From IMG/VR virus record IMGVR_UViG_3300018080_000098, positions 124,001-188,000 of that record: 64,000 nucleotides of DNA; one strand, 5' to 3'. The notes beneath the pieces were generated by a model. The model did not search any database. It was given only the letters and a program-made list of their open reading frames with translations, and was not told where the DNA came from. Positions 3,221 to 61,115 of the stretch are shown here, piece by piece. The translations under genes and the position numbers were made by a program. Within the stretch, counting starts at the first letter, position 1; each line of letters opens with the position of its first letter.

Positions 3221-3222
3221 TA

Positions 3223-3708: not shown

Positions 3709-3967
3709 CTAACTTTTCCGGGTCTCGCTCAATAGCCCCCGTGTGCACATCTACCTGTCGATGGTCCACCAAACCGTACCGCGTCGCCAAATCGTTTGAA
3801 AACGCCATCAACGTTCGACTCGCCTCCATCAACTGCAATTGAGCTGTGTCTATTTGTAGCGTGAAGAAATCTACGTTCCGATTCAACAACCGCAACTTCC
3901 AGAAATCCGCCTCGTCCAGCTTCTCCGCTTTCTGTTGGTCTACCACCGGCTTCTCTTGATTTTCCAT
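3677..3967 (-). CDS. Small helical protein next to the tail fibre (possible fibre chaperone)
   Basis: 96-aa ORF with AAAGG SD, directly downstream of the fibre gene; function inferred from position only. Confidence 0.65.
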   Translation of the reverse strand: MENQEKPVVDQQKAEKLDEADFWKLRLLNRNVDFFTLQIDTAQLQLMEASRTLMAFSNDLATRYGLVDHRQVDVHTGAIERDPEKLGGARESDDGK

Positions 3968-3983
3968 CGTAATCCTTTCCTCT

Positions 3984-8957: not shown

Positions 8958-11063
8958 CTATCTGCGCCGGTAGCTCTGGTTACGATTGTAGCCACCTCTG
9001 CGCCGTTTATTCACGCGTTTATTCCCTCCCCGCTTCTTGTTCAGTGTGCCTATCAGGTAGCTTCCAGCTGATGTACCTGCCAGGGTTTCATGCTCTATAT
9101 TGTCTCCAAGTTCGTCTAGGAATCGAGAAGGAGTGCAATCAATCACGGAGTTGTATCGAAACTCCTCCCTCGTGTGCGTGATTGTTAAGTAGCGTTCCGC
9201 ACGTGTGAGCGCCACGAAGAATATCCGCCTTTCCTCCTCGATGTCTTTCTGCATCTGCTTAGTAGACTTGAGTTGACCAAAGTCGTCTTCTTGCCTCACG
9301 ATGGGCATTACTCCATCAATAGCACCAATCACGTACAGACGAGGTAACTCCAGCCCCTTCGCCGCGTGGCACGTCATCAGATGCACCCGGTCGTCGTTTT
9401 CGTCTTCATCAGTAGATTGCATCAAAGCGGTCCACTCGATGAAGCGGAGAAGACCGCTTCCATGCGCTTCATCGAATTCCTGCGCCGCTTGGATGAGCTC
9501 ATCAATGTGCTCGAGCTTCCCTAAACTTTTGGCGTCCCCGTCTGTTTCTAGCACCTGCCGATACCGTGTTACCTCCACCACCTTCTCGATCATCGGGGCT
9601 ACCAAATCCCGCGGCATCTGATGTAGCGCTGCCAGAACCTCCCGGATGTTCTCAGCCCCCCGCAAAGAGCGCCCCTTGAGCACCCCTTCGTAGTCACGCT
9701 TCTTGAACACCGTCAGAATATGGCAACCAAGCTCCTCTTTGAGCTTGTAGAGCTTTGCGTAGCTCGTTTCCCCAAAGCCTCTGGGCGGCTTGTTGTAGAT
9801 ACGGATGAAGCTAGCGTCGTCCGCACCATTCAGGACGAGCTTGAGGTACGCTAAGATGTCCTTCACAATCGACCGATTGTAGAATCCAAGACCACCAATG
9901 ATTCGGTGAGGAACGTTGTTCGTGACCATGAGCTCTTCAAAGATACGAGACTTCGTGTGCATCCGGTACAGGATGGCAAAGTCGCCCCAGTTGGCTTTCT
10001 CTTTTCGTACCTCCGTAAGGATTTGGTCCACCACCACAGCTGCTTCCTGTTTAGGGTCGAGGCACTCAAGGCAGCGCACAGGTTCCCCATCTACTCGTGC
10101 TCGGATTTTCTTAGGTTTCCTTCCTTCGTTGTGCTCGATGAGCTCGTTGGCCACTTCAGCAATCTGGTGGGTTGAGCGAAAGTTGTCTTCCAGGAAGTAC
10201 ACCTTCAAATCCGGGAAGTCCTGCTCCATTGCATTCATGTTTTCAGGTCGTGCTCCTCGGAAGGCATAAATAGACTGGTCGTCGTCCCCGATAACATACA
10301 CATTGCCATGGGAACTGGCTAGGTGTTTAACCAATTCGTATTGGCTGAGATTGGTGTCCTGACCTTCGTCTACTAGTAGGAACTGAGTCCGCTCAGCATA
10401 TTTAGTTCTGACATCCTCATCTTCTCGAAGTAGTAGAACTGTTTTCATAATGAGGTCATCAAAGTCTAGCGTACGCGTTTTTTCTAGCGTAGCAGCGTAG
10501 CGTCTGTATACCTTCGCGTAGAAGACGTCTTCTTTGCTAGACCCTTCATCCAGCGCATCATAGACGTCATTAGGGAGATAAAGCTGCTGTTTCTTTTTTG
10601 AGATAAACCGTTTTGCACGGTCGGGTGATTGATAGTTTTTCTGTCCCTTAACCTTTTTCGGATCGGTCCCTGTCTCCAACGCAATAGCTTGCACTACATA
10701 CGCTTTTGAGTCGGAGTCATCACAGATGGTGTAATTTTCAGGCAACCCTGCTGCTTTGTGTTCGTACCGAAGCAGTCTGGCACATAGGGAATGGAAGGTA
10801 GAGACATGCACCATCTGAGCTGCGGATTTAGGTAACATCTGGGCTACACGTTCTCTCATCTCATCCGCTGCTTTGTTAGTAAACGTAATCGCTACGATGT
10901 TTCGTGGGCTCACCTTGTGGTGTTTGATTAGGTGCGCAATGCGATGTGTAGCGCAGCGGGTTTTCCCTGACCCGGGGCCGCTTACCACCAGTGCCGCCCC
11001 CTCAAAGTGTGTCGTCGCTGCTCGTTGCTGTGGTGTAAGATGCTCTAAGTAATCTTGTTCCAT
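8958..11063 (-). CDS. uvrD: UvrD/PcrA SF1 DNA helicase
   Basis: SGPGSGKT, AITFTNKAA, LLVDEGQD, GDDDQSIYAFRGA, NFRST, MTCHAAKGLE, EERRIFFVALTRA. Confidence 0.95.
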   Translation of the reverse strand: MEQDYLEHLTPQQRAATTHFEGAALVVSGPGSGKTRCATHRIAHLIKHHKVSPRNIVAITFTNKAADEMRERVAQMLPKSAAQMVHVSTFHSLCARLLRYEHKAAGLPENYTICDDSDSKAYVVQAIALETGTDPKKVKGQKNYQSPDRAKRFISKKKQQLYLPNDVYDALDEGSSKEDVFYAKVYRRYAATLEKTRTLDFDDLIMKTVLLLREDEDVRTKYAERTQFLLVDEGQDTNLSQYELVKHLASSHGNVYVIGDDDQSIYAFRGARPENMNAMEQDFPDLKVYFLEDNFRSTHQIAEVANELIEHNEGRKPKKIRARVDGEPVRCLECLDPKQEAAVVVDQILTEVRKEKANWGDFAILYRMHTKSRIFEELMVTNNVPHRIIGGLGFYNRSIVKDILAYLKLVLNGADDASFIRIYNKPPRGFGETSYAKLYKLKEELGCHILTVFKKRDYEGVLKGRSLRGAENIREVLAALHQMPRDLVAPMIEKVVEVTRYRQVLETDGDAKSLGKLEHIDELIQAAQEFDEAHGSGLLRFIEWTALMQSTDEDENDDRVHLMTCHAAKGLELPRLYVIGAIDGVMPIVRQEDDFGQLKSTKQMQKDIEEERRIFFVALTRAERYLTITHTREEFRYNSVIDCTPSRFLDELGDNIEHETLAGTSAGSYLIGTLNKKRGGNKRVNKRRRGGYNRNQSYRRR

Positions 11064-11071
11064 CGTAGTAA

Positions 11072-11371
11072 TCAGCGCCGCTCTAGCGCGTCCCCAATAG
11101 TAGCCCGCTCCTGCGGGTCCAGTTCGTTCTGTGAGCTCCGCGCCAAATCCCGCTTGAGCTCAGCTTCTTGTATCCCCTGTTCTATCGCTTTTTCCGACCA
11201 ACCGCAAGGCTTAAATCCATAGAGCTTCTTGTACTGCCTACGCAAACTCTCCAACCGCGTCAGCTCCTTCGGCCCCTGATGCCAATGTGGAACCACTCCA
11301 CTAGAGTCCGTCTTTCCACTGTCCTGCTGTTTCGAGGTGAGTTGCTCCATCGCTGAATCCTGCTTCGTCAT
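11072..11371 (-). CDS. Hypothetical protein
   Basis: ORF track 11072..11410; start moved to the ATG of MTKQDS; start uncertain. Confidence 0.55.
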   Translation of the reverse strand: MTKQDSAMEQLTSKQQDSGKTDSSGVVPHWHQGPKELTRLESLRRQYKKLYGFKPCGWSEKAIEQGIQEAELKRDLARSSQNELDPQERATIGDALERR

Positions 11372-11771
11372 GTTCCTTCGTCTTCCCCTTGTACACGAGG
11401 TGATAATCACACTCGCCTATTCCGGCCTTCCACAGCCGGATGTTGTCGTCCGCAGCTATCGGTACCGGGTCCTTCCGACGTATGTCGTCCGCGTCCGAGT
11501 ACGCAATCGCCAGATACCAGGTATGCAGATGTATAATAGGAGTGCCAACGTACAGCAAGATATAACCTAGTAGACGCTCCCGAGAAAATTTCGCCGCCTT
11601 CCCATACACGCCCACCAGAGATACCCGGTCTCCATGCTGCTTGATCACTTCATGGTGAGGCTGCTCATCATGGGCGATGGACTTCAGTTTTAACACAAAC
11701 CCGTGGTCACCGCAACGGGTAATAAACGCACTCTCGTAAAGGTTCCACTGCTCGACCGCAGTCCGCAACAC
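11301..11771 (-). CDS. Hypothetical protein
   Basis: 3' part of ORF 11301..11888, filling the gap after the clamp gene; start uncertain. Confidence 0.55.
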   Translation of the reverse strand: MLRTAVEQWNLYESAFITRCGDHGFVLKLKSIAHDEQPHHEVIKQHGDRVSLVGVYGKAAKFSRERLLGYILLYVGTPIIHLHTWYLAIAYSDADDIRRKDPVPIAADDNIRLWKAGIGECDYHLVYKGKTKEHDEAGFSDGATHLETAGQWKDGL

Positions 11772-11776
11772 TCCCT

Positions 11777-12979
11777 CTAACTCGCTAGACTCTCCTCTAG
11801 CATGTCCAGGTCGATCTGCGACATGAAGTACTCGATCCTCCCGTTGTCGCTCTCCGCTGCCCTTACGATTACTTTTCTTCCGTTCCATAGCTCTACCGTC
11901 AATGGCGTTACCTCAGGAGCCAGATTCAAAATGCTCTCGAAGTAATGCTGGTTGAGATACATAATCACCGGACCGCCCCCACGAGCCTTCGCCGTCGATG
12001 TAGGAATCTTCGACAACCCCGTCTTCCCATCCTTCTGCGCCGCCAACAGCACCTCGCTCTTCTCCACCTTCACATTCAACGTCAACGGCTCCGTTGCCGT
12101 CGAACTTACCTTCCCCACCGTCGACACCGCTTCCCGAATGTTCTTCCGAAGCGCCGTGAACATGCAGTCCATCTGCCCCTCCACCGTCTCCTTGTACACC
12201 GCGTCCGCATCCATGAATGGAGCCTCGATCGTCGGGTAGAACAAGTCCGCGTCCGCAGACTTGAACCGCACCATCCGAGTCTCCTCTATGTTACGCTCCA
12301 CCCCAATCTCCACCATAGACCCCTCGATGCTCCCCAGTATCGTGCTCAACGATACCGCCTTCAGTATGAACCGAGCGTTCGTACGTACCTTGATGTCTGT
12401 CGACCGCAGAAGACAGCGCCCGTAACTGTAGAAGTCGAGCCCCACCATCTCCAGCAACGCGCGCCCATCACCACCAGCCGGGCCAAGCTTGAACTGCATC
12501 CGCATCTCTTCTTGCTTCAGCCCCGGCTTGATCGCCACAAACCCAGCCGTCCGTGCCAACGCGTCCGACGGTATCCGCGCCACAATTGGCATCTCGTAGT
12601 CCGTAGGCTTCGTGTTCTCTATCACGTCCGCCGCTTCCTGGTCCGCGGGCAAGTCATACTTCGTCTTCTTCGTCGAAAAGTGCACCAATCGAACGTTGTA
12701 GTCGTACTCGATGGTCACCGTCCCCGACAACCGGTACTTCGCTACCTCCACCAGATCTACCCCGATGCTCCCCTCCCGCAACGTCTTCGCCTTCACAGCT
12801 TTCTGTACGTACGCTCCGTTGTTAGCTACATCGATCAGCAGTAGCCCCTCTACCACCTTCAAACGCCCCTTGAACCCACCGTCCCCCGTCTTCTTCGTGC
12901 TTTCAGTGCTCAGCTTCTGAAGCGTCTGTAACGCCTTCACCGTCTTCTTCAGGTCCTTCGCCGCTATTTGCACTTTCAT
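11777..12979 (-). CDS. dnaN: DNA polymerase III beta-like sliding clamp
   Basis: 400 aa, N-terminal MKVQIAAKDLKKTVKAL, repeated alpha/beta segments, C-terminal LNQHYFESIL...LTVELW...IEYFMSQI; a DnaX-like loader is also present. Confidence 0.6.
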   Translation of the reverse strand: MKVQIAAKDLKKTVKALQTLQKLSTESTKKTGDGGFKGRLKVVEGLLLIDVANNGAYVQKAVKAKTLREGSIGVDLVEVAKYRLSGTVTIEYDYNVRLVHFSTKKTKYDLPADQEAADVIENTKPTDYEMPIVARIPSDALARTAGFVAIKPGLKQEEMRMQFKLGPAGGDGRALLEMVGLDFYSYGRCLLRSTDIKVRTNARFILKAVSLSTILGSIEGSMVEIGVERNIEETRMVRFKSADADLFYPTIEAPFMDADAVYKETVEGQMDCMFTALRKNIREAVSTVGKVSSTATEPLTLNVKVEKSEVLLAAQKDGKTGLSKIPTSTAKARGGGPVIMYLNQHYFESILNLAPEVTPLTVELWNGRKVIVRAAESDNGRIEYFMSQIDLDMLEESLAS

Positions 12980-33232: not shown

Positions 33233-34678
33233 ATGCATGCGGTAAATCATTCTCAAGCGGAAAACTGGAGTACTTTTAATGACTTAGCCAAGAGGACTCT
33301 TGAATATGATCCTTTGGTGAAAGAGGATCTAACTCGGACGTTCCTCCAAATCGAACAGTTGATATTCAAGGGTGTAGACTATCTCCTGATGGCTACTACG
33401 TTCGTGGAAGACAATTTGTGCTATCTTCTCGCAGAGATAGCGTCTGGAGTCATTAAGAGCCGGAAGGTCTACAAGGGGAAACGGGTCCGCCGACGAGTTG
33501 CCATGAACGACGAGATAGAAATGGGCGCTGAAAACAAGCGGATCTTCGGTATCGGCTTCGATCTCTTCAAACTCTCACGCATGGATCGCCAACACGCAGT
33601 TCCCTTCTCCAAACGTATCATTCGCACACTCCGCATTTCTACCAGCCACTACGAAAACATCCTTACCGCGTTCGCTAAGGTGGGCGCCCGCTACATTGAA
33701 GTATCCGACGATCTCGCCCACACTACCCTGCGCTTGATCAACCAACGCCAGAAAAACGAGAAGCGTGCTACGAAAAAGGGAGCAGCTTCCGAAACAGCGC
33801 TTACCAAGCAGGCCGAAGAGTTCATCGATCAAATGGACCTCCTCGAGCTCGATATGGGGTGCGTTGAGCCCAATCTTCTCTACGGCACCATCCGCGCAGT
33901 AGTTCGCATCCTGAAGCGCGTGCGCGTTCTGCAAGAGCGCATTCTGAAAGCGTACTCCCGTTTGGTGCTGAAGCCAGTGAAAGGCCGCGCACAAACAGAG
34001 ATGGAGGCCCTTGACCTGTTTCAATCAGGTAGCCTGGGCCTCTCACGCGCCATCTCCTTGTACGATCTCCGCTGCGGCACCAGCTTCCCTACCTTCGCAA
34101 ATTGGTGGATACGTCAGAAAATACTCGGGAGCGCGAAGCACAGCGGTTCCCTCATCAAGTTACCTGGTTCCGTAATCGAACGCTACCAGGAGATCACGAA
34201 AGCTGAACGTTTCTTTGAATCCAACCCCGACCTCCGCGATTCTTATACTATAGAAGATGTAGCCGCACGTTGCAAAACTACAGCCAAGTCCGTCGAGCTT
34301 GTACTCCGAAAAGTGCGCAGCACCCGTGTGGTCTCTCTAGAGTCGATGGTGAGCAGCAACGAGGAGGGGTACGAAAGTGACCTGGCAGCCGACCGAGCTC
34401 TGCTTGATGAGTCAATGGAAGAAGAGGAGGCGCTTCAGGCCACCTCCGAGTTCGTTTCTCAAGTACTCAGTCATGTAGAGGAAAGCCAACGCAACCTCGT
34501 GTGCCTGCGTTACGGAATCATTGAGCGCGTGGTATCTAAACTTGACCCTCGTCAAGAGGTACGTGAGCTCTTCCGCCAAGCTGCATGCAAAGCTTTGCTG
34601 CAGCAGAAGATGTCGATGCGTGCTAACAGCCATCTAGCGATGCTCCGGGTGGAGGAGCTTCCCGCCGACCAAAAATAG
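33233..34678 (+). CDS. Phage RNA polymerase sigma factor (RpoD/sigma70 family)
   Basis: Region 2 DLFQSGSLGLSRAISLYDLRCGTSFPTFANWWIRQKI, LIKLP, region 3 TIEDVAARC...VVSLE; region 4 degenerate. Confidence 0.88.
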   Translation: MHAVNHSQAENWSTFNDLAKRTLEYDPLVKEDLTRTFLQIEQLIFKGVDYLLMATTFVEDNLCYLLAEIASGVIKSRKVYKGKRVRRRVAMNDEIEMGAENKRIFGIGFDLFKLSRMDRQHAVPFSKRIIRTLRISTSHYENILTAFAKVGARYIEVSDDLAHTTLRLINQRQKNEKRATKKGAASETALTKQAEEFIDQMDLLELDMGCVEPNLLYGTIRAVVRILKRVRVLQERILKAYSRLVLKPVKGRAQTEMEALDLFQSGSLGLSRAISLYDLRCGTSFPTFANWWIRQKILGSAKHSGSLIKLPGSVIERYQEITKAERFFESNPDLRDSYTIEDVAARCKTTAKSVELVLRKVRSTRVVSLESMVSSNEEGYESDLAADRALLDESMEEEEALQATSEFVSQVLSHVEESQRNLVCLRYGIIERVVSKLDPRQEVRELFRQAACKALLQQKMSMRANSHLAMLRVEELPADQK

Positions 34679-49710: not shown

Positions 49711-50496
49711 ATGTCGGATTACAAAAATGACATTGCTGCTCGACTCAGCGAGCGCCTGCAGCAGCGAGTAGCCAGCACACGCAGTGGGCGCTTCGACCTG
49801 AAGCTGGCTGACTACGCCATCACGAGCCCCCACGAGGCACGTGTTATGGTGGCTTTCACTTCGGAAATGGGGCAGCCGAAACGCTCCGAGCTCGACCAGT
49901 GGGTCACGTCGTCCTTCAACGGAAACGTGAGCCTCACACTCGAGACTCTGCGTCTGTACCCGGACCTCAACGTCGTTACTGCATTCGTGCGTAAGAACCG
50001 TCGGTATCGTCCGCTCGAGGACACCAAGAAGTACCGCATGGCTTCTGTAGGCAAGAACCAGTACATGGACGACGAGAAGGTCATCTGGGAAGTCATGAGC
50101 AACGGGGACGAGCGCTTCCTAGCCCGCGCTGAAAAGGACGACCTCGAGGAAATCATGCGCGTACGCCTCTCCCGCGAGCGCACTGCTTCCATGCATCACC
50201 GGTTGCGCCTGTCCGACATCGTGACCGCTGGTATCAATAGCCTCGAGTCCGGTGACCGCGTGTCCTTCTCTTATGAGGGCATCCTTCAGCAGGGCGAAGT
50301 GAGCAACGTCGGCAAGGATACAGTCACCATCAAGGCCAACGGTAAGTCTGTCACCGTGGACCGCCTCGCAGTGGTCGACGTGACCGAGAAGGCTCCGAAA
50401 GCTCAGGCTGAGCAGAAGCGGTTCTTGGAGGACTTCTTCACCCGCGCTTACGGTGACAAGGCGTTCGCCAAGGAACTCGTATCCAAGGGTGACTAG
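49711..50496 (+). CDS. Hypothetical, possibly head-associated protein
   Basis: 261-aa ORF with AGGAG SD; heads the motif-protein array. Confidence 0.75.
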   Translation: MSDYKNDIAARLSERLQQRVASTRSGRFDLKLADYAITSPHEARVMVAFTSEMGQPKRSELDQWVTSSFNGNVSLTLETLRLYPDLNVVTAFVRKNRRYRPLEDTKKYRMASVGKNQYMDDEKVIWEVMSNGDERFLARAEKDDLEEIMRVRLSRERTASMHHRLRLSDIVTAGINSLESGDRVSFSYEGILQQGEVSNVGKDTVTIKANGKSVTVDRLAVVDVTEKAPKAQAEQKRFLEDFFTRAYGDKAFAKELVSKGD

Positions 50497-50509: not shown

Positions 50510-50938
50510 ATGAGCGCCCCTTCGCACATCAAGTACAAAGGCGCTACGTATCGCCGTCGCTGCCGGGTGGCCGTATGGGAACCCTCTAAAGGTGAGAAGA
50601 ATTTCAGCGCAGCTTCTTTGCTGGAAGCTTTTCCAGACCTTTCCGAAGGGGTAGTCAACCAGCTTGCCGAAGATGCTAAAGGTGTCTACGGTAAGAACGC
50701 CTCAGCTTTCTTGGAAAAGGCCGATACCGCTATCGGCGGTTTCGGTGTAGAAGCTGTTCGTTCTGAAGGTGCGTGGGATTCCTACTACGGTGACGTCGTT
50801 GCCGAATATGTAAATACTGGCGATACGTACAACGCAACCCTTCTCCACGACATCGAAGATGATGAGATCTACTTGACGACATATGGAGATTGGGTTCAGG
50901 CCTGGGAATACGAGAAGGAAAAAGAGGACAATCAATGA
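50510..50938 (+). CDS. YxG-motif protein 1
   Basis: N-terminal HIKYKGATYRR. Confidence 0.75.
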   Translation: MSAPSHIKYKGATYRRRCRVAVWEPSKGEKNFSAASLLEAFPDLSEGVVNQLAEDAKGVYGKNASAFLEKADTAIGGFGVEAVRSEGAWDSYYGDVVAEYVNTGDTYNATLLHDIEDDEIYLTTYGDWVQAWEYEKEKEDNQ

Positions 50939-51645
50939 CCACTCCCAAGTACATCCGTGTAGCTGGGCAGCTTTACCGTCAGCGTGAAGAGGAAATTCCT
51001 GCGTTCGTCAAGCACGACGGCTGGATCTACAAGCTCGCACAGACGGGAGCAGAGAACGTCGCTGCTATCGACGCACTTACCAAGCTGTCAAACCTGGCGA
51101 AGAAAATGGCCGACAGCGTAAAGGACCAGCAGATCTCCAAATTGCTTCAACAGGCTTACGGAGAGCTCGGTGTCCTCGCTACCAAGCTGGCCAAAGGTGA
51201 CTTCGAGGCGAAGTCCGCTGCGTTGAAAAACTGGGAAGACCTCAAAAAGGGCCTTTCCCAGTTCGCCCAACAGCTCGAAAAAGCGCAGCTGTCCAAACTC
51301 AGCAGTGCACTCACCAAGATGCTACAGGACAGCGATACCGCCCTTTCCGAACTCCAGAAAGCCGAAGGACTCGGCGCCGAGTTCGGTACCCCGGGTGGCG
51401 TCACTCCTTCTGGTAAGCCCAGCGTCGATTGGGGAGAGCACGCGCCGAAGAAGGATGAGCCTCAGCCGCTGCACGCGTCTACCGTGCCGGGCTTTTTCAC
51501 ACACAAGGGTGAGCAGTACCGTCCTCTCCTCCCGATTACCAAGGAAGCCGTTGCCTGGGCGACGTCTACCGATCCGAACGTGATCGCGGAGCGAAAGACG
51601 TTCCCACCCCTCGTGGTGCACCTGCTCGCGTCCGGTGTAGCGTAG
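50935..51645 (+). CDS. YxG-motif protein 2 (3 copies)
   Basis: PKYIRVAGQLYRQ, PAFVKHDGWIYKL, PGFFTHKGEQYRP. Confidence 0.75.
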   Translation: MTTPKYIRVAGQLYRQREEEIPAFVKHDGWIYKLAQTGAENVAAIDALTKLSNLAKKMADSVKDQQISKLLQQAYGELGVLATKLAKGDFEAKSAALKNWEDLKKGLSQFAQQLEKAQLSKLSSALTKMLQDSDTALSELQKAEGLGAEFGTPGGVTPSGKPSVDWGEHAPKKDEPQPLHASTVPGFFTHKGEQYRPLLPITKEAVAWATSTDPNVIAERKTFPPLVVHLLASGVA

Positions 51646-51654
51646 GCCCAGGTC

Positions 51655-52458
51655 ATGGCCAAGCACGGCCCAGACTTCTACAACGTTACCATCACGGCTG
51701 TCCGCAACTACGAACCCGGTAAGGGACCGCCGAGGAAGGCACAGTTTTGGAACTTCTCCCAGGCTGTGCAATCCAACAGCGGGCCATCGGGAGCCCTCGC
51801 CGCGATGGTGGACAAGTTTTTCAGGTACTACCCCAACCATGCTGTCGTCCTCCCTGATGGAGAACGTGGTCAAAAAATTCTCACGTGTGAAAACCGTTCC
51901 GGGGTAGAGAGCTACTTGTCCGGAAGAACTACGCGTTCTCATGGCGACATAATGCTTGAGAGCGCAGATTCTACACTACTCATTAAGAAGATGCGCGCTC
52001 TCTCCGGAGAAACCCCTATAGGTCTCACGCCCAAGAGCGAAAAAGAGTACGACGACGCGCTGCAGGGTAACATGGAATCCTATAAGTGGTGGCAGGACCC
52101 AATCGTGCAGATGCCCGCCCCCATCTACGTTTTAGATAAAGCAGCCGAGTCCGAAGATGCTCCCGGTACCATTCGGTACAAAGGGCGCCTCTACAGACGG
52201 GCAGCTGCAACTTCTTTGGCAGACCTCCCGCCCGAGAAGGCTAAAGCACTTTTCTTTGGCATCATGGAGAAGGTGACAGAAGGGATAACCACCGTTCATC
52301 AGCTCCTCGTGGACGCTGGGGAACAGCTGCAAACGGAAGAGGGAGACGCTACTCCTCTCCTCGCAGATGCTGCCAAACGAACATACAAAGAAGTACTCCC
52401 GCTCATCCTGGACGCTCGAGATATCGCGCATTCTTTAAAGGAGCTTCCCAGTGAGTAG
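51655..52458 (+). CDS. YxG-motif protein 3 (internal copy)
   Basis: PGTIRYKGRLYRR. Confidence 0.75.
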   Translation: MAKHGPDFYNVTITAVRNYEPGKGPPRKAQFWNFSQAVQSNSGPSGALAAMVDKFFRYYPNHAVVLPDGERGQKILTCENRSGVESYLSGRTTRSHGDIMLESADSTLLIKKMRALSGETPIGLTPKSEKEYDDALQGNMESYKWWQDPIVQMPAPIYVLDKAAESEDAPGTIRYKGRLYRRAAATSLADLPPEKAKALFFGIMEKVTEGITTVHQLLVDAGEQLQTEEGDATPLLADAAKRTYKEVLPLILDARDIAHSLKELPSE

Positions 52459-52960
52459 GCAGCTCCTCAGATACCGCGGCGTCCTCTACAAAAGAGTAGA
52501 GGCCACCCAACATCCGGTCAGCGGAGATGAGTTGAAGTCGTTGGCCACGGAGCTTGAGGTTGCACAAACTCATCTTGCAGAAGTGATCGCAGACGCTGAA
52601 AAAGTCACCAACGATGCGAAGAAGCTTCAAAAATCTCTCGCTACCGGAGCTCACGAGGTGCTACGGTCTCTTCGTAGTGACGGAGAGGTAGACCCCAGCG
52701 AGGTTCGGTTGCTCACTCCGGAAGGACGGCAAGAAGGGTATATGAATCCTCTCCGTTCCATGGAGAAGGCCAACCGGATGCTCAACTACACCGTGGACGC
52801 TGCCATCGCTGCTATCAAGACCAGCATCGAGCAGGTCGATACGATGGTAGATGAGTGGCACGCCGCTCTCGATGAAATGAATTCACCTAACACGTCCCGC
52901 GAGCTCACCGCTCCCATGGTGATGACTGATAGTCCCGCGGACGACGTGCCAACGCTTTGA
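52451..52960 (+). CDS. YxG-motif protein 4
   Basis: N-terminal LLRYRGVLYKR. Confidence 0.7.
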   Translation: MSRQLLRYRGVLYKRVEATQHPVSGDELKSLATELEVAQTHLAEVIADAEKVTNDAKKLQKSLATGAHEVLRSLRSDGEVDPSEVRLLTPEGRQEGYMNPLRSMEKANRMLNYTVDAAIAAIKTSIEQVDTMVDEWHAALDEMNSPNTSRELTAPMVMTDSPADDVPTL

Positions 52961-52968
52961 GGTTGCCT

Positions 52969-53427
52969 ATGCGCCCTACTAGAACACTCACAGATCCACT
53001 CAACATGGACCTCGAGGCCCGCCTGCGCCAGCGGTTCGCAGAGTTCCCTCGACAGGCTGCAGAACCAGAGCTCGAGGCAACAGAAGGGGACCCGGTTCCA
53101 GTAGAGCAGCCTCTTCCAGTAGCAGAAGATGGCATTTCTTCCGAAGAGCTCGCCATCCAACAGCTTCGCCCACTCTACGAGAACCTGTTGCGCGCTCGTC
53201 GTCAGCTGAACAGCCTCTCTGGAGAGCTCACTCGAAGGAAGCTCACCGATTCCCAGTTCAAAGATCTAGGCATCGTAGAAGACTGGCTCGGTGTCACCAA
53301 GAGCATCGCACGCCAGTACGGCGAAGCGCTCATTCAGATGGAACAGATTCTCGAGCAGCTCATTGAAGGCGTCATCGCGTATCGAGCCAAGTTCAACAAG
53401 GATCCCAGTTTCCTCGAAGGCGAGTAG
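52969..53427 (+). CDS. Hypothetical helical protein
   Basis: In-operon ORF; start uncertain; no motif copy. Confidence 0.65.
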   Translation: MRPTRTLTDPLNMDLEARLRQRFAEFPRQAAEPELEATEGDPVPVEQPLPVAEDGISSEELAIQQLRPLYENLLRARRQLNSLSGELTRRKLTDSQFKDLGIVEDWLGVTKSIARQYGEALIQMEQILEQLIEGVIAYRAKFNKDPSFLEGE

Positions 53428-53431
53428 CACC

Positions 53432-53749
53432 ATGGACGTTGGGTTTCGTAACGGACAGGGTTACTACGATCGCGAGCAGCGTCGCACCGATTGGATCACA
53501 GCCTACGACAAAGATACCCTCGAAAAAGTAGGCACCGTCCTGTTCCGCGTTCACGGAAACAAATGCTACGTGCAAGACGTTTTCGTGTTCCCAAATTTTC
53601 GTAGACAAGGATTCGCTACTCGCCTTGTACAAGCGATGATCTCCAACACCAAGCTCCCCTACCAACAACTTCGGTGGGGAATCAAATCGGATGATGGAGT
53701 GGCATTGAAACGAGCTCTAGACCGCCGATTCGGGAAAGGAGACCAATGA
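53432..53749 (+). CDS. GNAT-family acetyltransferase
   Basis: YVQDVFVFPNFRRQGFATRLV contains the acetyl-CoA-binding motif A (RxxGxA). Confidence 0.8.
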   Translation: MDVGFRNGQGYYDREQRRTDWITAYDKDTLEKVGTVLFRVHGNKCYVQDVFVFPNFRRQGFATRLVQAMISNTKLPYQQLRWGIKSDDGVALKRALDRRFGKGDQ

Positions 53750-53976
53750 GCCGAGTGAGAGTAAGACGATGCCGGGCAAACTCCGGGAGCCCCATCCGCT
53801 ACGTCAACTACGGTTACGGCCCCGCTGCCACACCAGGCAGACCGTCTCCAGGACGAATCGTGCGCGTAGCTCCCGGTCTCCCCTGGGCCAACCGAGGTGT
53901 GCGCTACCCCGTGCATCCACTCAACTACGTTGACACTTCCAGGTACTTTTTTAATCGTAATCCTGGTTACTTTTAG
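53746..53976 (+). CDS. Small Arg/Pro/Tyr-rich protein
   Basis: ATGA-coupled 76-aa ORF with AAAGGAG SD. Confidence 0.6.
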   Translation: MSRVRVRRCRANSGSPIRYVNYGYGPAATPGRPSPGRIVRVAPGLPWANRGVRYPVHPLNYVDTSRYFFNRNPGYF

Positions 53977-53984
53977 AGGTCGTT

Positions 53985-54638
53985 ATGGATCAGCACTCGC
54001 TTCTACAACAGCATCTGCAGTTCCTGCGCCGCCTCGCGGGTCCCTCGAGAGCTCGTACGGCCGCGGGTGACTTCGAGGTGTTCAGCACCCATCCATCGGT
54101 ACACATCTACCAGCGTGTGCCTACCATCAAAGCAGCCGTCGAGCTCGTGCACAAGCTCGCTCCTGAGCACCCGGATGTGATGTTGAACGTGTGGACGCCT
54201 GAGCAGAAGCACGCCTACCAGGCTATCTTCCGCGCAGACGAGGGTAGGCTCGACGTGCTCATCGGTAGCCAGTGGAGCCCTAAGGAGCTTCCGAGAGCCG
54301 CTGAAATTATTCGGTATCGGGGAGCTACGTATTACAAGGAAGGGCCCAACATGCCAAAGCCCCCAAAGAAGATCAAAGTTAATGGGCAGGTCTACGAGTT
54401 GGCAAGTGTGAAGAAGGAAGCTGCGCATTACAAACCTGTGGATACTGCTCCACCGGAAACCAAGTATCAGTTCCTGATTTCCTTGGGTCCCAAACAGTAC
54501 GTGTTTTTCTTTGATGGTGACCGACGCTTTCTCGGATGGGCTCCTTCTATGGCGCAAGGCTTGAACATTCCCGAAGATGCAGAGGTAGCAGAGACCAACT
54601 ACCAGTTAGCTTTGATCCCGGGCCAATGGACCAAGTAG
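53985..54638 (+). CDS. YxG-motif protein 5 (2 copies)
   Basis: EIIRYRGATYYK, PKKIKVNGQVYEL. Confidence 0.75.
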   Translation: MDQHSLLQQHLQFLRRLAGPSRARTAAGDFEVFSTHPSVHIYQRVPTIKAAVELVHKLAPEHPDVMLNVWTPEQKHAYQAIFRADEGRLDVLIGSQWSPKELPRAAEIIRYRGATYYKEGPNMPKPPKKIKVNGQVYELASVKKEAAHYKPVDTAPPETKYQFLISLGPKQYVFFFDGDRRFLGWAPSMAQGLNIPEDAEVAETNYQLALIPGQWTK

Positions 54639-54641
54639 CTC

Positions 54642-54669
54642 TTGACATCCAGCATCGCTCTGCTACATT
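54642..54669 (+). promoter_or_regulatory. sigma70-type promoter for the ncRNA
   Basis: TTGACA-16 nt-TACATT with a TG extension. Confidence 0.6.
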
Positions 54670-54675
54670 GTGGCC

Positions 54676-54895
54676 ATCGAAGGATTAGCTGAGTCAATGA
54701 GAACACGGAAACAGACAGCAACGTCAGTGTTGGGAGCGCGGATGCGCTGCGTCCCAGCACATCCGTGCCTCTTCGGGGCCAATTGGGAGAGTCTGTACGG
54801 CATCTCCACCGACCCCGAAGATCCGGGTGGCTAATCCGTGTAGAAGCAGAAAAGGATACACGAGAAAGCCACCCGGGAAACCAGGTGGCTTTTTT
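54676..54895 (+). ncRNA. Orphan multi-helix, pseudoknotted ncRNA (~220 nt)
   Basis: Helices 54682-89/54830-37, 54704-09/54762-67, 54727-35/54752-60, 54770-78/54813-21 and 54786-90/54803-07; pseudoknot 54711-16/54791-96; promoter and terminator flank it. Confidence 0.7.
54865..54895. terminator. Intrinsic terminator, possibly bidirectional
   Basis: AAAGCCACC/GGTGGCTTT stem with a GAAA-capped top, followed by TTTTTT. Confidence 0.8.
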
Positions 54896-55072
54896 GTTGC
54901 TCACACCCAGTGAGCCAGCGTAGATAGGTTGGGACCAGGTTGTAGGTAGGCTGGTTTGCGGGTGAGACGTAGACCCAGATTCTGGATTCGTCTGGACCTG
55001 TGGGACGTCAAGAGAGGGTGAGCAGATTCATACGGCAGCCTTCTTGCCAACCGAAAGGCTGCAGTCCCTCCG

Positions 55073-55126
55073 AGGGTGGGGCGGCGACGGCGTTCGCTGT
55101 TGGAGCGCCGCCCCACCCTTGTTTTT
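55073..55126 (+). other. Perfect 14-bp GC-rich hairpin followed by TGTTTTT (terminator-like)
   Basis: AGGGTGGGGCGGCG 55073-86 / CGCCGCCCCACCCT 55106-19. Confidence 0.6.
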
Positions 55127-55435
55127 CTACTCGTCTTTTAGCGCTGCCAGAAGTGCTTCGAGGCGACTTGGTAGGGTGGGCACCACGCTGGATAGGTAGG
55201 ATTTGTCACCTGCTGCCAAAGCTGTCGCTGTCATCACAAGCTTCTCCATGAGCTCAGCCATAGCGTACTCAGGTGAACTCGTTTCTCCTGCTTTGTGCAG
55301 TCCATTGAGAAGGTTCGAAATCTCGCGATGGGCTGTTCCTAGTGATTTGTCTATCTGCCGCAGCTTCGCGGAAAAGTCTTCATCCGCTTTGCGGTACAGA
55401 TGTCCCCCAACTTTGATGTAGGCAGGAATTTTCAT
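55127..55435 (-). CDS. YxG-motif protein 6
   Basis: MKIPAYIKVGGHLYRKAD. Confidence 0.7.
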   Translation of the reverse strand: MKIPAYIKVGGHLYRKADEDFSAKLRQIDKSLGTAHREISNLLNGLHKAGETSSPEYAMAELMEKLVMTATALAAGDKSYLSSVVPTLPSRLEALLAALKDE

Positions 55436-55439
55436 GCGC

Positions 55440-55796
55440 CTAGTCGTCGAGCTCGTACAGTGCGCCCCGAAAGCGGATCTGCTTCGGCGCAGCTTCCACC
55501 TTCCTATAGACGTGACCACCGACCTTGATGCGGTCCGGTACCACACCCGCTTCCTTCTTGCCCTTGCCAGCTTCCTGGCCCTTCTCGGCCAGCAGGTCCA
55601 TCGTCTTCTCGACGGTGTTCTCCGGACCCTTCACCTCGGTGAGGTTCGGTGTCTGAAGACTCTTCTCCCAATCCTTGATTTCACTGGTAGGAACCTTCTC
55701 TTCCGGTCCACCCTCGTTGGGAATTTCCACTTCGGGAGAGTCGCCCAGGTTGCCCTGCAGGTTGTTGTCCACTTCTAGTTTCTTCTCGTCTGCCAT
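55440..55796 (-). CDS. YxG-motif protein 7 (2 C-terminal copies)
   Basis: PDRIKVGGHVYRKV, PKQIRFRGALYEL. Confidence 0.75.
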   Translation of the reverse strand: MADEKKLEVDNNLQGNLGDSPEVEIPNEGGPEEKVPTSEIKDWEKSLQTPNLTEVKGPENTVEKTMDLLAEKGQEAGKGKKEAGVVPDRIKVGGHVYRKVEAAPKQIRFRGALYELDD

Positions 55797-55845
55797 GACT
55801 TCTTCCTTTGCGTTTTCAAAAGTCGTGTGAAATATTTCTCAGCAG

Positions 55846-56193
55846 CTAACCGCCGCCGTTGCCTCCACCGTTTCCGCCACCACCCCCATCCCCACCAGCT
55901 CCTGCGCCACCATCACCACCTAGAGCTCCAGCGTAATCGCCTTCACCGATATCCGGATTCACTCCAGTCTCAATTTGACTGGGGTGCTTGACCTTCTTTT
56001 CCGCCTTCTCCCGCGGGAGTGAGTAGATGTCCTTGCTCTGCTTGATGGCGTCCTGGACCTTCTTGTTCTCGCCCTTCTCGCGAGGCTGCTCGTCGCTGAT
56101 AGGTACGGCGACGGCGCCGTAGTCACCTTCGCGCAGGATGTACGTGGCTCCCTTGTAAATCAATTTTTTGGTCGGTTTGTTTTTACGCACCAT
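55846..56193 (-). CDS. YxG-motif protein 8 with Gly-rich tail
   Basis: KKLIYKGATYILR; C-terminal poly-Gly. Confidence 0.7.
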   Translation of the reverse strand: MVRKNKPTKKLIYKGATYILREGDYGAVAVPISDEQPREKGENKKVQDAIKQSKDIYSLPREKAEKKVKHPSQIETGVNPDIGEGDYAGALGGDGGAGAGGDGGGGGNGGGNGGG

Positions 56194-56212
56194 GCTGAAC
56201 CTTCTTTGCAGA

Positions 56213-56539
56213 CTACCAGTTGATGACTACCTTGGCGTTCAAGGCTTCACCGATCTGCTCCTCTAGTCGATGTTGCACCTTACGAAATTCATCACTCTGT
56301 GCTTCGTGCTTCACGTCCCGCAGGAATTCCACACGCTGCGCTGTATCTACAAAGCCCATCTCTCGAGCCACTTTGCTCAGCGCACTCAGAGCGCGGTACA
56401 CATCCATGTGAGCGTCGAAGAGGGCTTTGAAGTCTTCGTGGAGCCACTTGTATCCTTTCTCCACTGTTTCTTTGTCAGCACCTGTTCGGAGATAGGTGGC
56501 GCCTCTGTACTTGATTTTATCGGGTGCTTCTTTACTCAT
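56213..56539 (-). CDS. YxG-motif protein 9
   Basis: PDKIKYRGATYLR. Confidence 0.75.
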   Translation of the reverse strand: MSKEAPDKIKYRGATYLRTGADKETVEKGYKWLHEDFKALFDAHMDVYRALSALSKVAREMGFVDTAQRVEFLRDVKHEAQSDEFRKVQHRLEEQIGEALNAKVVINW

Positions 56540-57083
56540 CGTTTCCTCTCCGTGTGTACTTACGCCCTTTGTACTCGATAGCAGTTGGAGCCGAGCTCGA
56601 GGACCAATGAAGCGTCTTCAGCCCTAGTGGATAGATAGCCTCTTCCGGACCTTCCGCTCCAGGAACTCCCTTCCAGTCGGTGATGTCGCCGCCAGTGATT
56701 GGCTCTCTGCCTTCCTCACTTTCCTGCTGCACGTCACGCTCACGTACCGACCAGGGGAAGTAGCTCGAGGCCAGCTCCGGGTCGAGAATACCAGCTCGCA
56801 AGAAAGTACGCACAGTACGTTGGAGTATCTTGTTGGCTGCTTCCATAGGAGCCGCGAGCCCTGTTAGTCGATTGGCCACCCTCCCATACGATTTTACATC
56901 TTCAGGGTCCCCATGGTCGATTTCCCGCTTGAGGGTGTCCGCACTTTCTGCTACTATGTCGAGGATGGTCGCCAGCTCACCTACCCGCTGTCGGGCCTTG
57001 CGGTACTGCTGGTTCTGAGCGGACACGAGTCGGTATACTCGACCGTGAACACGAATGTGTGTGGGAAGCTTTTCCTGAGACAT
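56532..57083 (-). CDS. YxG-motif protein 10 (copies at both ends)
   Basis: PTHIRVHGRVYRL, PTAIEYKGRKYTR. Confidence 0.75.
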   Translation of the reverse strand: MSQEKLPTHIRVHGRVYRLVSAQNQQYRKARQRVGELATILDIVAESADTLKREIDHGDPEDVKSYGRVANRLTGLAAPMEAANKILQRTVRTFLRAGILDPELASSYFPWSVRERDVQQESEEGREPITGGDITDWKGVPGAEGPEEAIYPLGLKTLHWSSSSAPTAIEYKGRKYTRRGNDE

Positions 57084-58251: not shown

Positions 58252-58513
58252 GTACCTGCGCACGGCAATGTTCCCCGAGAAGCTAGGACGAAGCAACGGT
58301 TACCCGGGAGGTTCTGTGTGGAAGACACGTGAGGAAGCTCAGGCTTTCGTTGATAGCTTTCCCAACGGCCACTGTCCTGATTGGGAACCTGAGGACTTTT
58401 CTGTCTACGGCGTGGAAGCTGATTGGGAAACTGATACTTACATCTACGCAGGTGATCACCGAGCTCCTTGGCGGTCCTTGAAGCGCAACGCCAAACTAAT
58501 CAAACTGTCATGA
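58208..58513 (+). CDS. Hypothetical protein
   Basis: Start at MTMIYTF; ends in an ATGA overlap with the next gene. Confidence 0.6.
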   Translation: MTMIYTFGRTFTYDKYLRTAMFPEKLGRSNGYPGGSVWKTREEAQAFVDSFPNGHCPDWEPEDFSVYGVEADWETDTYIYAGDHRAPWRSLKRNAKLIKLS

Positions 58514-59067
58514 ACTACGCAGGTATAGGCACGCGGTACCCTTCCGAGGAACAGGCAGCACTCTGTTCTAAGATTGGTACGTACCTGGCTGTGCGTGGCT
58601 ATGTGCTCCACACGGGAGCAGCTCCCGGTGTAGACCAATTGTTCACTCGAGCAGCTCTCAAAGCTGGAGGCCGAGTAGTCCTGCATCTACCGTGGCCGAA
58701 GCACGAGCAGGAGTTTCGAGATAGCATACCAAAGGAGCTCCAGCAGTTCGTCGAGGTTCGCGTGCTCCAGTCGAAGAAGAAAGAGCGCGACCATATTGCT
58801 TTCGATTCAGTAGACGAGTATCACCCTGCATCCACGAGGCTCAGTTGGGGCGCTCTCTGCCTGCACGCGCGAAACTATCGCATCGTGGTGCCGGAGGACG
58901 ACCACCCAGTGGACTTCGTGCTCGCCTACCCCAGCCCCCACGGTGGCGGAACGATGCAAGGTGTGCGAATAGCTCACGCGCTCGAACGACCGGTAGTGCG
59001 GTTGGACCAGCTTTCGCCTTCTGAAGCAAGAGCCTGGATTAACGACTTGACGCGCACGCACACGTAG
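58510..59067 (+). CDS. SLOG-superfamily (DprA/YspA-like) protein
   Basis: YAGIGTR, LHTGAAPGVD, GGTMQGVRIA. Confidence 0.75.
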   Translation: MNYAGIGTRYPSEEQAALCSKIGTYLAVRGYVLHTGAAPGVDQLFTRAALKAGGRVVLHLPWPKHEQEFRDSIPKELQQFVEVRVLQSKKKERDHIAFDSVDEYHPASTRLSWGALCLHARNYRIVVPEDDHPVDFVLAYPSPHGGGTMQGVRIAHALERPVVRLDQLSPSEARAWINDLTRTHT

Positions 59068-59380: not shown

Positions 59381-59453
59381 GCTGGCGTAGCTCAACTGGT
59401 AGAGCAGCTGATTTGTAATCAGCCGGTTGGGGTTTCGAGCACCTCCGCCAGCT
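59381..59453 (+). tRNA. tRNA-Thr (UGU), CCA not encoded
   Basis: Acceptor GCTGGCG/CGCCAGC, D stem GCTC/GAGC, anticodon stem GCTGA/TCAGC with TGT at 59414-16, T loop TTCGAGC. Confidence 0.92.
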
Positions 59454-61042: not shown

Positions 61043-61115
61043 CGGGGATGTGGTGTAATCTGGTAACACACGTGCTTTGGGAGCACGAATTGCCGTTCAA
61101 ATCGGACGTCCCCGA
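61043..61115 (+). tRNA. tRNA-Pro (UGG) with atypical 8-bp acceptor and shortened T stem
   Basis: CGGGGATG/CGTCCCCG, D stem GTGT/ACAC, anticodon stem CGTGC/GCACG with TGG at 61078-80, T loop TTCAAAT, C1-G72 and A73. Confidence 0.85.

Follow-up and report, generated by a model that had tools for sequence, protein, structure and literature searches.

Introduction

A known short signal for loading proteins into a phage head is the capsid targeting sequence (CTS) of phage T4, a 10-20 residue N-terminal propeptide shared by the otherwise unrelated internal proteins IPI-III and Alt, which recruits them to the prohead core, is removed by the prohead protease, and can package foreign proteins (PMC5694885). 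The T4 gene order is 20-67-68-21-22-23, with the genes for the core components 67 and 68 lying between portal and protease. Giant phages of the SPN3US and phiKZ-like type also load many different proteins into the head, and the conserved N-termini of their ejection proteins, lineage-specific propeptides of up to about 125 residues that are cleaved at defined protease motifs, are thought to act in targeting (PMC5694885). Encapsulin cargo-loading peptides, C-terminal extended peptides that act in cellular nanocompartments, are likewise short linear tags, of a kind that could dock diverse cargo to the inside of an HK97-fold shell.

Here, we describe a beta-hairpin motif of about 15 residues, predicted from sequence, that is attached to dozens of otherwise unrelated proteins in one uncultured lineage of huge phages. 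The motif was first noticed in a 64,000-nucleotide stretch (hereafter, the window) of a 349.8 kb IMG/VR huge-phage contig (IMGVR_UViG_3300018080_000098). Like the T4 CTS, it is a short peptide shared by otherwise unrelated proteins, and in one lineage its genes occupy the slot of the T4 core genes. It also occurs internally and at C-termini, in up to five copies, and no recognizable cleavage site follows it. At 15 residues, modular and repeated, it is different from the long propeptides of the SPN3US and phiKZ-like phages, and the phage belongs to another group, with a PaBG/Lu11-like capsid protein. The encapsulin tags, which are of a different sequence, are an analogy only. Because its genes crowd around the capsid-assembly genes, the motif is probably an address tag that loads varied cargo into the phage head, a function that is inferred from gene context only.

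Results

The motif is present in 15 copies and is enriched far beyond chance

The initial annotation, made from the sequence alone, listed 15 copies of the motif in ten dissimilar proteins encoded in two convergent arrays, and this observation is confirmed. All 15 copies are present, in frame, in 10 ORFs between positions 50510 and 57083 of the window, with a plus-strand array at 50510-54638 and a minus-strand array at 55127-57083. Enrichment over shuffled sequences, which had been named beforehand as a test, was evident: a core regular expression matched 12 times in the 10 proteins (1657 aa), while 20,000 residue shuffles gave a mean of 0.02 matches and a maximum of 2. The same expression matched once in the rest of the window, and 14 times in 1.95 million six-frame residues of control phage DNA. 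A profile HMM built from the 15 copies scored each of them at 20.7 bits or more, and the next hit in the window at 10.5 bits. A second HMM, built from 57 instances in five contigs, again found only these 15, plus one out-of-frame hit inside the RNR gene. That the motif occurs nowhere else is true of the window but not of the genome, since a second, larger set of motif genes surrounds the capsid gene about 100 kb further along the same contig. The claim that the rest of each protein is unrelated holds at the sequence level, because all-against-all BLASTP and phmmer comparisons of the array proteins with the motif masked found no significant similarity, although several of the proteins share a layout of a hairpin followed by a helical part.

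From 150 instances, the motif can be written as [A/P]-P-x-x-I-[KR]-[YVF]-x-G-x-[LVI]-Y-[RKV]-[LR]-[AV]. AlphaFold2 (AF2), run on a 35-sequence alignment of tandem motifs, predicted strand-turn-strand twice, that is, two beta-hairpins with a two-residue x-G turn (pLDDT 84.2).

Organization of the two arrays

The plus-strand array begins with g1 (50510-50938, 142 aa), which carries one motif at the N-terminus (8-residue core at 50528-50551). It is followed by g2 (50935-51645, 236 aa), with tandem N-terminal motifs (50953-50976 and 51007-51030), a helical middle part, and a third motif near the C-terminus (51496-51519). Orthologues of g2 were found in the related sequences L004, L005, and L137, and a relative, P0003, fuses a tagged Sigma70_r2 domain to a g2 orthologue. 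In g3 (51655-52458, 267 aa), one internal motif (52171-52194) lies between a conserved N-terminal domain, which stands alone in the related sequence L141, and a helical C-terminal part. The next gene, g4 (52451-52960, 169 aa), has the motif at the N-terminus (52466-52489), and g3 and g4 are fused in L005. Two plus-strand genes of the array, g5 (52957-53427, about 140-156 aa), with orthologues in L004 and L137, and g6 (53432-53749, 105 aa), a GNAT acetyltransferase (Pfam Acetyltransf_1, E=1.3e-07) conserved in L137, have no motif. The motif is also absent from a small conserved R/P/G-rich ORF (53746-53976, plus strand, 76 aa), which has orthologues in L005 and L141 and no PHROGs hit. The array ends with g7 (53985-54638, 217 aa), which contains internal tandem motifs (54309-54332 and 54372-54395), and whose single-sequence AF2 model was unusable (pLDDT 39.7).

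On the minus strand, g8 (55127-55435, about 102 aa) has the motif at the N-terminus (55394-55417), followed by a helical part. In g9 (55440-55796, 118 aa), an acidic N-terminal part that looks disordered precedes tandem motifs (55506-55529 and 55455-55478) that end 3 residues before the stop, and for which AF2 on the tandem-motif alignment predicted two hairpins. The gene g10 (55846-56193, 115 aa) combines an N-terminal motif (56140-56163) with a glycine-rich C-terminal tail, and g11 (56213-56539, 108 aa) has an N-terminal motif (56492-56515) followed by a helical part, with no homologue other than itself among 5.8 billion clusters. Finally, g12 (56532-57083, 183 aa) carries one motif at the N-terminus (57033-57056) and one at the C-terminus (56556-56579), and its orthologue P0007 has three copies and lies in the same synteny.

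Immediately upstream of the arrays is a conserved gene without the motif (49711-50496, plus strand, 261 aa, phrog_17573). This protein is not specific to the motif system: it has homologues in Motura and in BcepSauron (gp074, located after the tail sheath and tube genes), and the BcepSauron head-tail region scanned has no motif. A copy also lies directly upstream of the tagged sigma-like protein P0003.

The motif is portable

The motif occurs at N-termini, at C-termini, and internally, in 1-5 copies per protein. About 48% of the 150 instances are N-terminal, with the start Met 10-12 residues before the invariant Gly, while others sit at exact C-termini or between domains. In the window, the first copy lies within the first 20 residues in 7 of the 10 proteins, and 8 of the 15 copies are internal or C-terminal. 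The motif is often separated from the rest of the protein by linkers rich in P, E, D, and A, and no fixed acidic or other conserved position follows it beyond +6. Tagged proteins carry unrelated domains, namely, Sigma70_r2, Nudix (plus a ParB-like motif seen by eye), DUF5661, or AAA_33.

No Pfam or PHROGs family matches the motif

No Pfam or PHROGs model and no PDB sequence matched the motif, and no paper found in the library searches describes it. Against PHROGs v4, no hit at E<=0.01 was obtained for the window proteins or for tagged proteins of L065 (the head-gene locus of this phage's own contig), and the small clade B motif proteins gave only weak partial hits to families of unknown or unrelated function. 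The initial annotation had suggested a resemblance to the YRG-x-x-Y core of DUF4278 (PF14105), the N-terminal part of IF17 (PMC6212724), the cyanobacterial factor that inactivates glutamine synthetase. This link is not supported. No DUF4278 hit was found for the ten array proteins at E<=1, for ten motif pieces of 30-49 aa at E<=10, or for any of 84 database relatives (profile hits at E<=1e-3), although the filters of HMMER may drop very weak matches. Neither was the expected genomic context found: genes of the IF17 type lie downstream of a glutamine riboswitch, glnA or Downstream-peptide RNA (PMC6212724), and a scan of the whole window at Rfam gathering thresholds returned only two tRNAs.

The resemblance to DUF4278 is rather of a generic hairpin kind, hydrophobic-x-aromatic-x-G-x-x-aromatic, which is shared by the repeats of MucBP, CBM5/12, and choline-binding domains. 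The 57-instance profile cross-hit proteins of these families, and weak Foldseek hits included hairpin-repeat proteins. The cross-hits, however, amount to 10 of the 84 and are Gram-positive surface proteins or other repetitive proteins unrelated to phage, and the window proteins match none of the respective Pfam models.

Motif genes are embedded in the head-morphogenesis block of two related lineages

In L065 (contig 274.6-295.7 kb), the gene order is scaffold-like protein, prohead protease, five motif genes, a phrog_16710-like protein, the major capsid protein, and then about 9 kb in which most genes carry the motif. In a second lineage, represented by the L041/L022/L088 contig, the portal (phrog_16240, E=7e-100) is followed by about 15 consecutive small genes, 14 of which start with the motif. 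These flank the head maturation protease (phrog_18299, E=4e-53), and then come the scaffold-like protein, phrog_16710, and the capsid protein phrog_2522. This is the slot of the prohead-core genes 67 and 68 in T4.

The distribution of the motif is clade-specific and all-or-none. All 13 head-gene loci of the two related lineages, the 12 with a capsid protein at least 78% identical plus L088, carry 1-16 hits, while the 67 other loci of the same capsid family (about 1 Mb), from other jumbo phages, carry none. The two motif lineages group together in the capsid-protein tree (support 0.90), and L068, the nearest capsid-protein relative of clade A, has no motif within 21 kb of its capsid gene. The best matches to the capsid protein among cultured phages are about 30% identical, and the three scanned around their capsid genes (GR11A, PaBG, and BcepSauron) lack the motif.

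Discussion

The interpretation offered in the initial annotation, a portable beta-hairpin address tag sending varied cargo to one receptor, is partly supported. That the motif is portable and is predicted to be a short hairpin agrees with our results, and the proposed destination (prohead, scaffold, or portal) gains real but indirect support from the packing of motif genes among the portal, protease, scaffold-like, and capsid genes. We think that the motif most likely acts as a capsid-targeting (cargo-loading) tag in one lineage of huge phages, a reading in which we have moderate confidence. In this view, the hairpin, with one hydrophobic or aromatic face (I, Y/V, Y) and one basic face, would dock by strand or groove binding onto a repeated site in the assembling prohead, for which the scaffold-like core protein, the inner face of the major capsid protein, and the portal are candidates. 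Alternatively, the hairpins could pair with each other to build the core. Any protein carrying one or more copies would then be incorporated into the head, multiple copies would add avidity on a lattice of identical sites, and the cargo would later be released or ejected with the DNA. The two convergent arrays of the window would be a second, variable cargo locus of the same system. While our analysis establishes the motif, its enrichment, its portability, the prediction of a hairpin, its all-or-none distribution by clade, and the embedding of its genes in the head-morphogenesis block, the docking, the identity of the receptor, the sufficiency of the tag for packaging, and the ejection are inferences. 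The T4 CTS provides a precedent (PMC5694885). Gene position is suggestive only, however, and some observations weigh against this reading: the arrays of the window lie among non-structural genes (ligase, SLOG/DprA-like, phosphoesterase, SpoU) and not next to head genes, no recognizable conserved protease site follows the tag, many copies are internal or C-terminal whereas the T4 sequence is N-terminal and cleaved, and the motif is missing around the capsid gene of L068.

The tagged sigma-like and enzyme domains would fit equally well a hub unrelated to the virion, in which the hairpin docks many phage proteins onto one intracellular partner, such as host RNA polymerase, the ribosome, the membrane, a chaperone or AAA+ machine, or a phage replication or transcription factory. 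The position of the window arrays among replication and nucleic-acid-metabolism genes, the fusion of the tag to a Sigma70_r2 domain at this same locus in a relative, the GNAT enzyme embedded in the array, and the basic face of the hairpin are in agreement with this possibility. We consider it unlikely, since it does not explain why most copies in the genome are packed inside the portal-protease-scaffold-capsid block, in two lineages, nor why other jumbo phages of the same capsid family lack the motif entirely. It is more doubtful still that the motif is only the best-conserved remnant, for example, a folding nucleus or cap, of a rapidly diverging paralogue family that arose by tandem duplication and shares no common binding partner. 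The tandem arrays of small ORFs, the layout of an N-terminal hairpin followed by a helical region in many of them, and the only modestly higher conservation of the motif than of the rest of the protein in orthologues (62% against 53% identity) would fit such an origin. The variable position and copy number of the motif, its fusion to unrelated Pfam domains, the linkers that often set it apart, and the lack of detectable similarity outside it argue against it.

A ligand-binding hairpin repeat, which by analogy with choline-binding, CBM5/12, or MucBP repeats would attach proteins to a glycan or cell-wall component, for example, as outer capsid decoration, finds support in the cross-hits of the profile and the weak Foldseek hits, but is very unlikely. 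Besides the lack of Pfam matches, most window proteins carry a single copy, while those binding folds need several consecutive repeats or a larger domain, as in the long tandem arrays of bacterial surface proteins. The reading of these proteins as relatives of DUF4278 or IF17 rests only on the shared Y-R-G-x-x-Y-like string in small proteins and is essentially refuted by the profile searches and by the context, a huge phage with a PaBG/Lu11-type capsid protein.

Peptides that direct unrelated proteins to the prohead are already known from T4; what differs here is a putative tag that is a sequence-defined, predicted beta-hairpin, not confined to the N-terminus and present in several copies in some proteins. 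A broader possibility, which the evidence leaves standing but which is tentative, is that a lineage of uncultured huge phages uses this one modular hairpin as a universal capsid address, loading several dozen different proteins into the head for co-delivery with the DNA, including sigma-like, Nudix, kinase-like, and many unknown ones. Copy number would set the dose, and new cargo would be recruited in evolution simply by acquiring the 15-residue tag at either end or between domains.

How jumbo and huge phages select the many proteins that they pack into their heads and inject is largely unknown outside T4 and a few phiKZ-like models, and this motif is a compact tag that can be recognized from sequence alone. 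If it is the loading signal, the cargo (ejectome) of an uncultured phage lineage could be read directly from its genome sequence, and it would point to host-takeover proteins, such as a tagged sigma-like factor, and give a simple experimental handle. It could also serve as a modular tag for packaging foreign proteins into large capsids. If instead the tag addresses a non-virion hub, it would still define a new multi-protein interaction network specific to this phage lineage.

Occurrence of the motif in the window

The ORF list and a six-frame regular-expression scan recovered, in frame, all 15 motif strings listed in the initial annotation, and these were distributed among 10 ORFs. On the plus strand the motif was found in g1 (50510-50938), g2 (50935-51645, three copies), g3 (51655-52458), g4 (52451-52960), and g7 (53985-54638, two copies), while on the minus strand it was found in g8 (55127-55435), g9 (55440-55796, two copies), g10 (55846-56193), g11 (56213-56539), and g12 (56532-57083, two copies). 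In seven of these proteins a copy lies within the first 20 residues, g9 and g12 end with a copy, and g2, g3, and g7 have internal copies. Three genes inside the plus array carry no motif: the ORF g5, a GNAT acetyltransferase (53432-53749; Pfam E=1.3e-07), and a small ORF of 76 aa, rich in R, P, and G, between the GNAT and g7 (53746-53976, plus strand). The GNAT is conserved at the same place in relatives (loci L137 and L004), although any action on the tagged proteins, for example on the lysines of the motif, would be conjectural. The small ORF is conserved in the related contig L005 (12916-13128) and in the related locus L141, and no family matches it.

The occurrence of the motif was then compared with chance expectation. 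A core pattern matched 12 times in the 10 proteins (1657 aa), whereas in 20,000 residue shuffles the mean was 0.02 and the maximum 2. The same pattern matched once in the other 57 kb of the window, read in six frames, and 14 times in 1.95 million six-frame residues of control phage DNA. An HMM built from the 15 copies separated them (20.7 bits or more) from the next hit in the window (10.5 bits), and an HMM built from 57 instances in five contigs again found only these 15, plus one out-of-frame hit inside the RNR gene. When the motif was masked, BLASTP and phmmer found no significant similarity among the array proteins. The observation made in the initial annotation, that one short motif recurs in 10 otherwise dissimilar proteins and nowhere else in the window, is confirmed as written.

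Similarity searches with the array itself gave little. No match was found by blastn of the region against GenBank phages, and only the GNAT was recognized when all array proteins were compared with Pfam and PHROGs. A homolog search with g11 in 5.8 billion clusters returned only g11 itself, and an ESM Atlas search with the same protein returned generic helical look-alikes below useful scores. The 486 bp gap that separates the two convergent arrays (54639-55126) contains no convincing ORF and no Rfam match; one sigma-70-like promoter match (10 of 12, with TG) lies at 54642-54669 on the plus strand, but the promoter and terminator scan was at background level overall. Elsewhere in the window, the Rfam scan found only two tRNAs, the plus-strand genes for tRNA-Thr(TGT) at 59381-59453 and tRNA-Pro(TGG) at 61043-61115.

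Genome of origin and neighboring genes

The window (positions 124,001-188,000) belongs to IMGVR_UViG_3300018080_000098, a viral contig of 349,793 bp. It encodes UvrD, DnaB-like, and DEAD-box helicases, ribonucleotide reductase, a sigma-70-like protein, and an ATP-dependent ligase. The DnaB-like helicase is only about 25-29% identical to those of cultured jumbo phages, namely, Vibrio GR11A and Erwinia, Xanthomonas, and Pseudomonas putida phages. The sigma-70-like protein (33233-34678, plus strand; 481 aa; Sigma70_r2, E=7.8e-09) contains a degenerate motif-like string at 33359-33382, which scores below the HMM cut-off.

The neighbors of the array are not structural genes, but a SLOG/DprA-like protein, a metallophosphoesterase, and a SpoU methylase. 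The SLOG/DprA-like protein (58468-59067, plus strand; LDcluster4, E=6.7e-10) is conserved next to the array in the related contigs L136-L138, in L005, and in L141, and in L005 it carries a long C-terminal extension. Upstream of the array is a conserved protein of 261 aa (49711-50496, plus strand; phrog_17573), whose homolog in Burkholderia phage BcepSauron (gp074) lies just after the tail sheath, the tail tube, and gp075, so it may be a structural or tail-associated protein that has moved here. This protein was also considered as a dedicated receptor for the motif, a possibility that was rejected as unlikely because it has homologs in BcepSauron and Motura, and the region of BcepSauron scanned has no motif.

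The motif outside the window

Relatives carry the same two convergent arrays with the motif retained, among them L005, a 260 kb contig, and the L136-L138 contigs. Orthologs of g2, g3, g4, g9, g10, and g12 exist, so these are real genes. In L005, g3 and g4 are fused into one protein of 436 aa (11404-12714) with a motif copy at each domain junction, and the motif appears to mark domain boundaries. A protein of 740 aa in the same contig, with a Nudix domain and a ParB-like motif seen by eye, has an internal copy.

Two pattern scans of IMG/VR found further motif-rich contigs: L009/L056, of 105.7 kb; L017, of 36.8 kb; and L022/L041/L088, a GC-rich contig of 22.5 kb in which 14 consecutive small genes begin with M-x-x-A-P-x-Q-I-K-Y-x-G-x-x-Y-x-x-A. 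In addition, a profile of 57 instances was searched against 1.84 billion representative proteins and returned only 84 proteins at E<=1e-3. About 74 of these are short, phage-like proteins with 2-5 copies, while 10 are unrelated repeat proteins, of which five are MucBP, one is choline-binding, and the others include CBM5/12-collagen. None of the 84 carries DUF4278. The genomic context of four hits was inspected, and all four gave phage-like contigs with GC from 0.43 to 0.57 and 5-11 copies each; two of these are syntenic with the window locus (L141) or with the region after the capsid gene (L140).

A second recurrent module, roughly L-P-K-G-W-[TS]...F[WY]...G....C......D..AFC..L, appears in the scaffold-like protein of L056 (2440-4782) and in two multi-tag proteins, one in L065, the capsid-gene locus of the window's own contig (12386-13363), and one in L009 (10887-13142). 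One of the 84 profile hits matched Pfam 2C_adapt (2-cysteine adaptor domain), but without a link to this module.

Consensus and predicted structure

The position-specific composition of the motif was derived from 150 distinct instances and is numbered here relative to the invariant Gly (position 0, 100%). Position -8 is A or P, position -7 is P in 83%, position -4 is I in 70% (also V or L), position -3 is K or R in 70%, and position -2 is Y in 53%, V in 29%, and F in 13%. After the Gly, position +2 is L, V, T, or I, position +3 is Y in 99%, position +5 is L in 51% and R in 28%, and position +6 is A in 59% and V in 19%. Residues further downstream are rich in E, D, P, and A, as in linkers, and no conserved protease site was found after the tag. 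About 48% of the instances have the start Met at -10 to -12.

For structure prediction, which was of single chains only, AF2 was run on a 35-sequence alignment of tandem copies, with the last 37 residues of g9 as the query. The model has a pLDDT of 84.2 and shows two strand-turn-strand hairpins, the turn falling at x-G. Reading the pattern on that predicted hairpin places I, Y/V, and Y on one face and K/R on the other, which is an inference. A single-sequence AF2 model of g7 was unusable (pLDDT 39.7). Comparison of the tandem-hairpin model with the PDB by Foldseek gave no hit with E<0.9, and the best match in a profile search of PDB sequences had E=1.2.

Distribution across phages

A capsid-protein profile scan of IMG/VR returned 80 loci, each with up to 10 kb of flank on either side. 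In L065, the locus from the window's own contig, the major capsid protein lies at about 284.6 kb and is 80% identical to that of L009. All 12 loci whose capsid protein is at least 78% identical (clade A) carry 1-16 HMM hits on the capsid-gene strand, and so does L088 (clade B, 29% identical), whereas the other 67 loci (26-36% identical, about 1.02 Mb) carry none. In a FastTree of the capsid proteins, clade A, the motif-less locus L068, and clade B form one group (support 0.90; A plus L068, 0.79), which lies inside the PaBG/Lu11/BcepSauron-type family, subgroup 2.2 in PMC7824862. L068 (IMGVR_UViG_3300021592_000001, 188 kb) is the closest capsid-protein relative of clade A (36% identity), yet it has no motif within 21 kb of its capsid gene; it represents either a loss or an outgroup, and would be a useful natural control. 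Among cultured relatives, no copy was found in 41 kb around the capsid gene of GR11A and of PaBG or in 35 kb of BcepSauron, so that no proteome can be borrowed from them. The motif is therefore a clade-specific, all-or-none character, which arose either once before clades A and B split or by transfer between them.

Genomic context of the motif genes

In the head module of the window phage, the portal (shown in L056) and two small genes are followed in L065 by an acidic scaffold-like protein (1769-3469), the prohead protease (3483-4361), five motif genes, a phrog_16710-like structural protein (9183-9968), and the major capsid protein (9995-11131). Then come about 9 kb in which most ORFs carry 1-4 copies at the N-terminus, internally, or at the exact C-terminus, one of them being a DUF5661 protein with four copies. 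In clade B, the portal (phrog_16240, E=7e-100) is followed by motif genes, the head maturation protease (phrog_18299, E=4e-53), more motif genes, the scaffold-like protein, phrog_16710, and then the capsid protein (phrog_2522). The acidic scaffold-like protein upstream of the capsid genes (L065 1769-3469; L022 7110-8492; L056 2440-4782) matches phrog_20988, which PHROGs labels "ATPase," but Pfam finds no domain in the L065 copy, so the label looks unreliable.

In the motif-less BcepSauron the capsid gene is followed by three small genes and then the tail sheath. The motif genes are thus an expansion inside the head-morphogenesis block, at the position where T4 encodes its prohead-core proteins gp67 and gp68, between portal gene 20 and protease gene 21. 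From the window and L065 alone, which together cover only 85 kb of the 350 kb genome, this genome has roughly 35 or more copies in about 25 proteins. A search for a receptor gene shared only by motif-bearing loci showed that only the general head genes (scaffold-like, protease, capsid, and portal) are shared, and phages without the motif have these too.

Interpretation

The best-supported reading, which we hold with no more than moderate confidence, is that the hairpin is a portable docking module that brings diverse proteins into the assembling head. It would be functionally analogous to the T4 capsid targeting sequence, which recruits internal proteins and Alt to the core and can package foreign proteins (PMC5694885). 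Several copies per protein would add avidity on a repetitive lattice, and the same level of confidence includes the variant in which the hairpins pair with one another to form the core. Our evidence consists of sequence, structure prediction, distribution, and synteny, whereas docking, the receptor, packaging, and ejection are inferred, in the absence of a cultured relative or a proteome. In this view, the arrays of the window would be a second, variable cargo locus. At the same position, directly after the ortholog of the protein at 49711, a relative (P0003, L142 361-1986) encodes a protein made of clear tandem tags, a Sigma70_r2 domain, and a g2 ortholog. The proposal of the initial annotation, a portable hairpin tag that sends varied cargo to one receptor and recalls DUF4278, is only partly supported: the short, portable hairpin is supported, the proposed destination in the head has only indirect support, and the relationship to DUF4278 is not supported.

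Other explanations account for part of the observations. Docking to a hub outside the virion is possible, though less likely, and fits both the non-structural surroundings of the array in the window and the sigma fusion, but it does not explain the concentration of copies in the head block. It is more doubtful that the motif is only the conserved remnant of a paralog family with no shared partner: while the tandem arrays and the recurrent layout of a hairpin followed by helices fit this idea, it is contradicted by the fusions to unrelated Pfam domains and by the variable position and copy number. A glycan- or wall-binding repeat is very unlikely, as it rests only on the profile cross-hits to MucBP, CBM5/12, and choline-binding proteins. 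The least likely identity is that of a DUF4278/IF17-like protein, DUF4278 being the N-terminal part of the cyanobacterial glutamine synthetase inactivating factor IF17 (PMC6212724). It failed every test run, by Pfam on the whole array proteins, by Pfam on short motif pieces at E<=10, among the 84 profile hits, and in the Rfam scan of the window, and the resemblance is the generic hydrophobic-x-aromatic-x-G-x-x-aromatic hairpin signature.

No Pfam model (2025 copy), no PHROGs v4 model, and no PDB sequence matches the motif, and no paper found in our literature searches, which covered open-access text only, describes it. Capsid targeting and cargo loading are already known; if the targeting reading is right, the system of these phages would differ in that the tag is a defined hairpin that works at either end of a protein or between domains, and in multiple copies.
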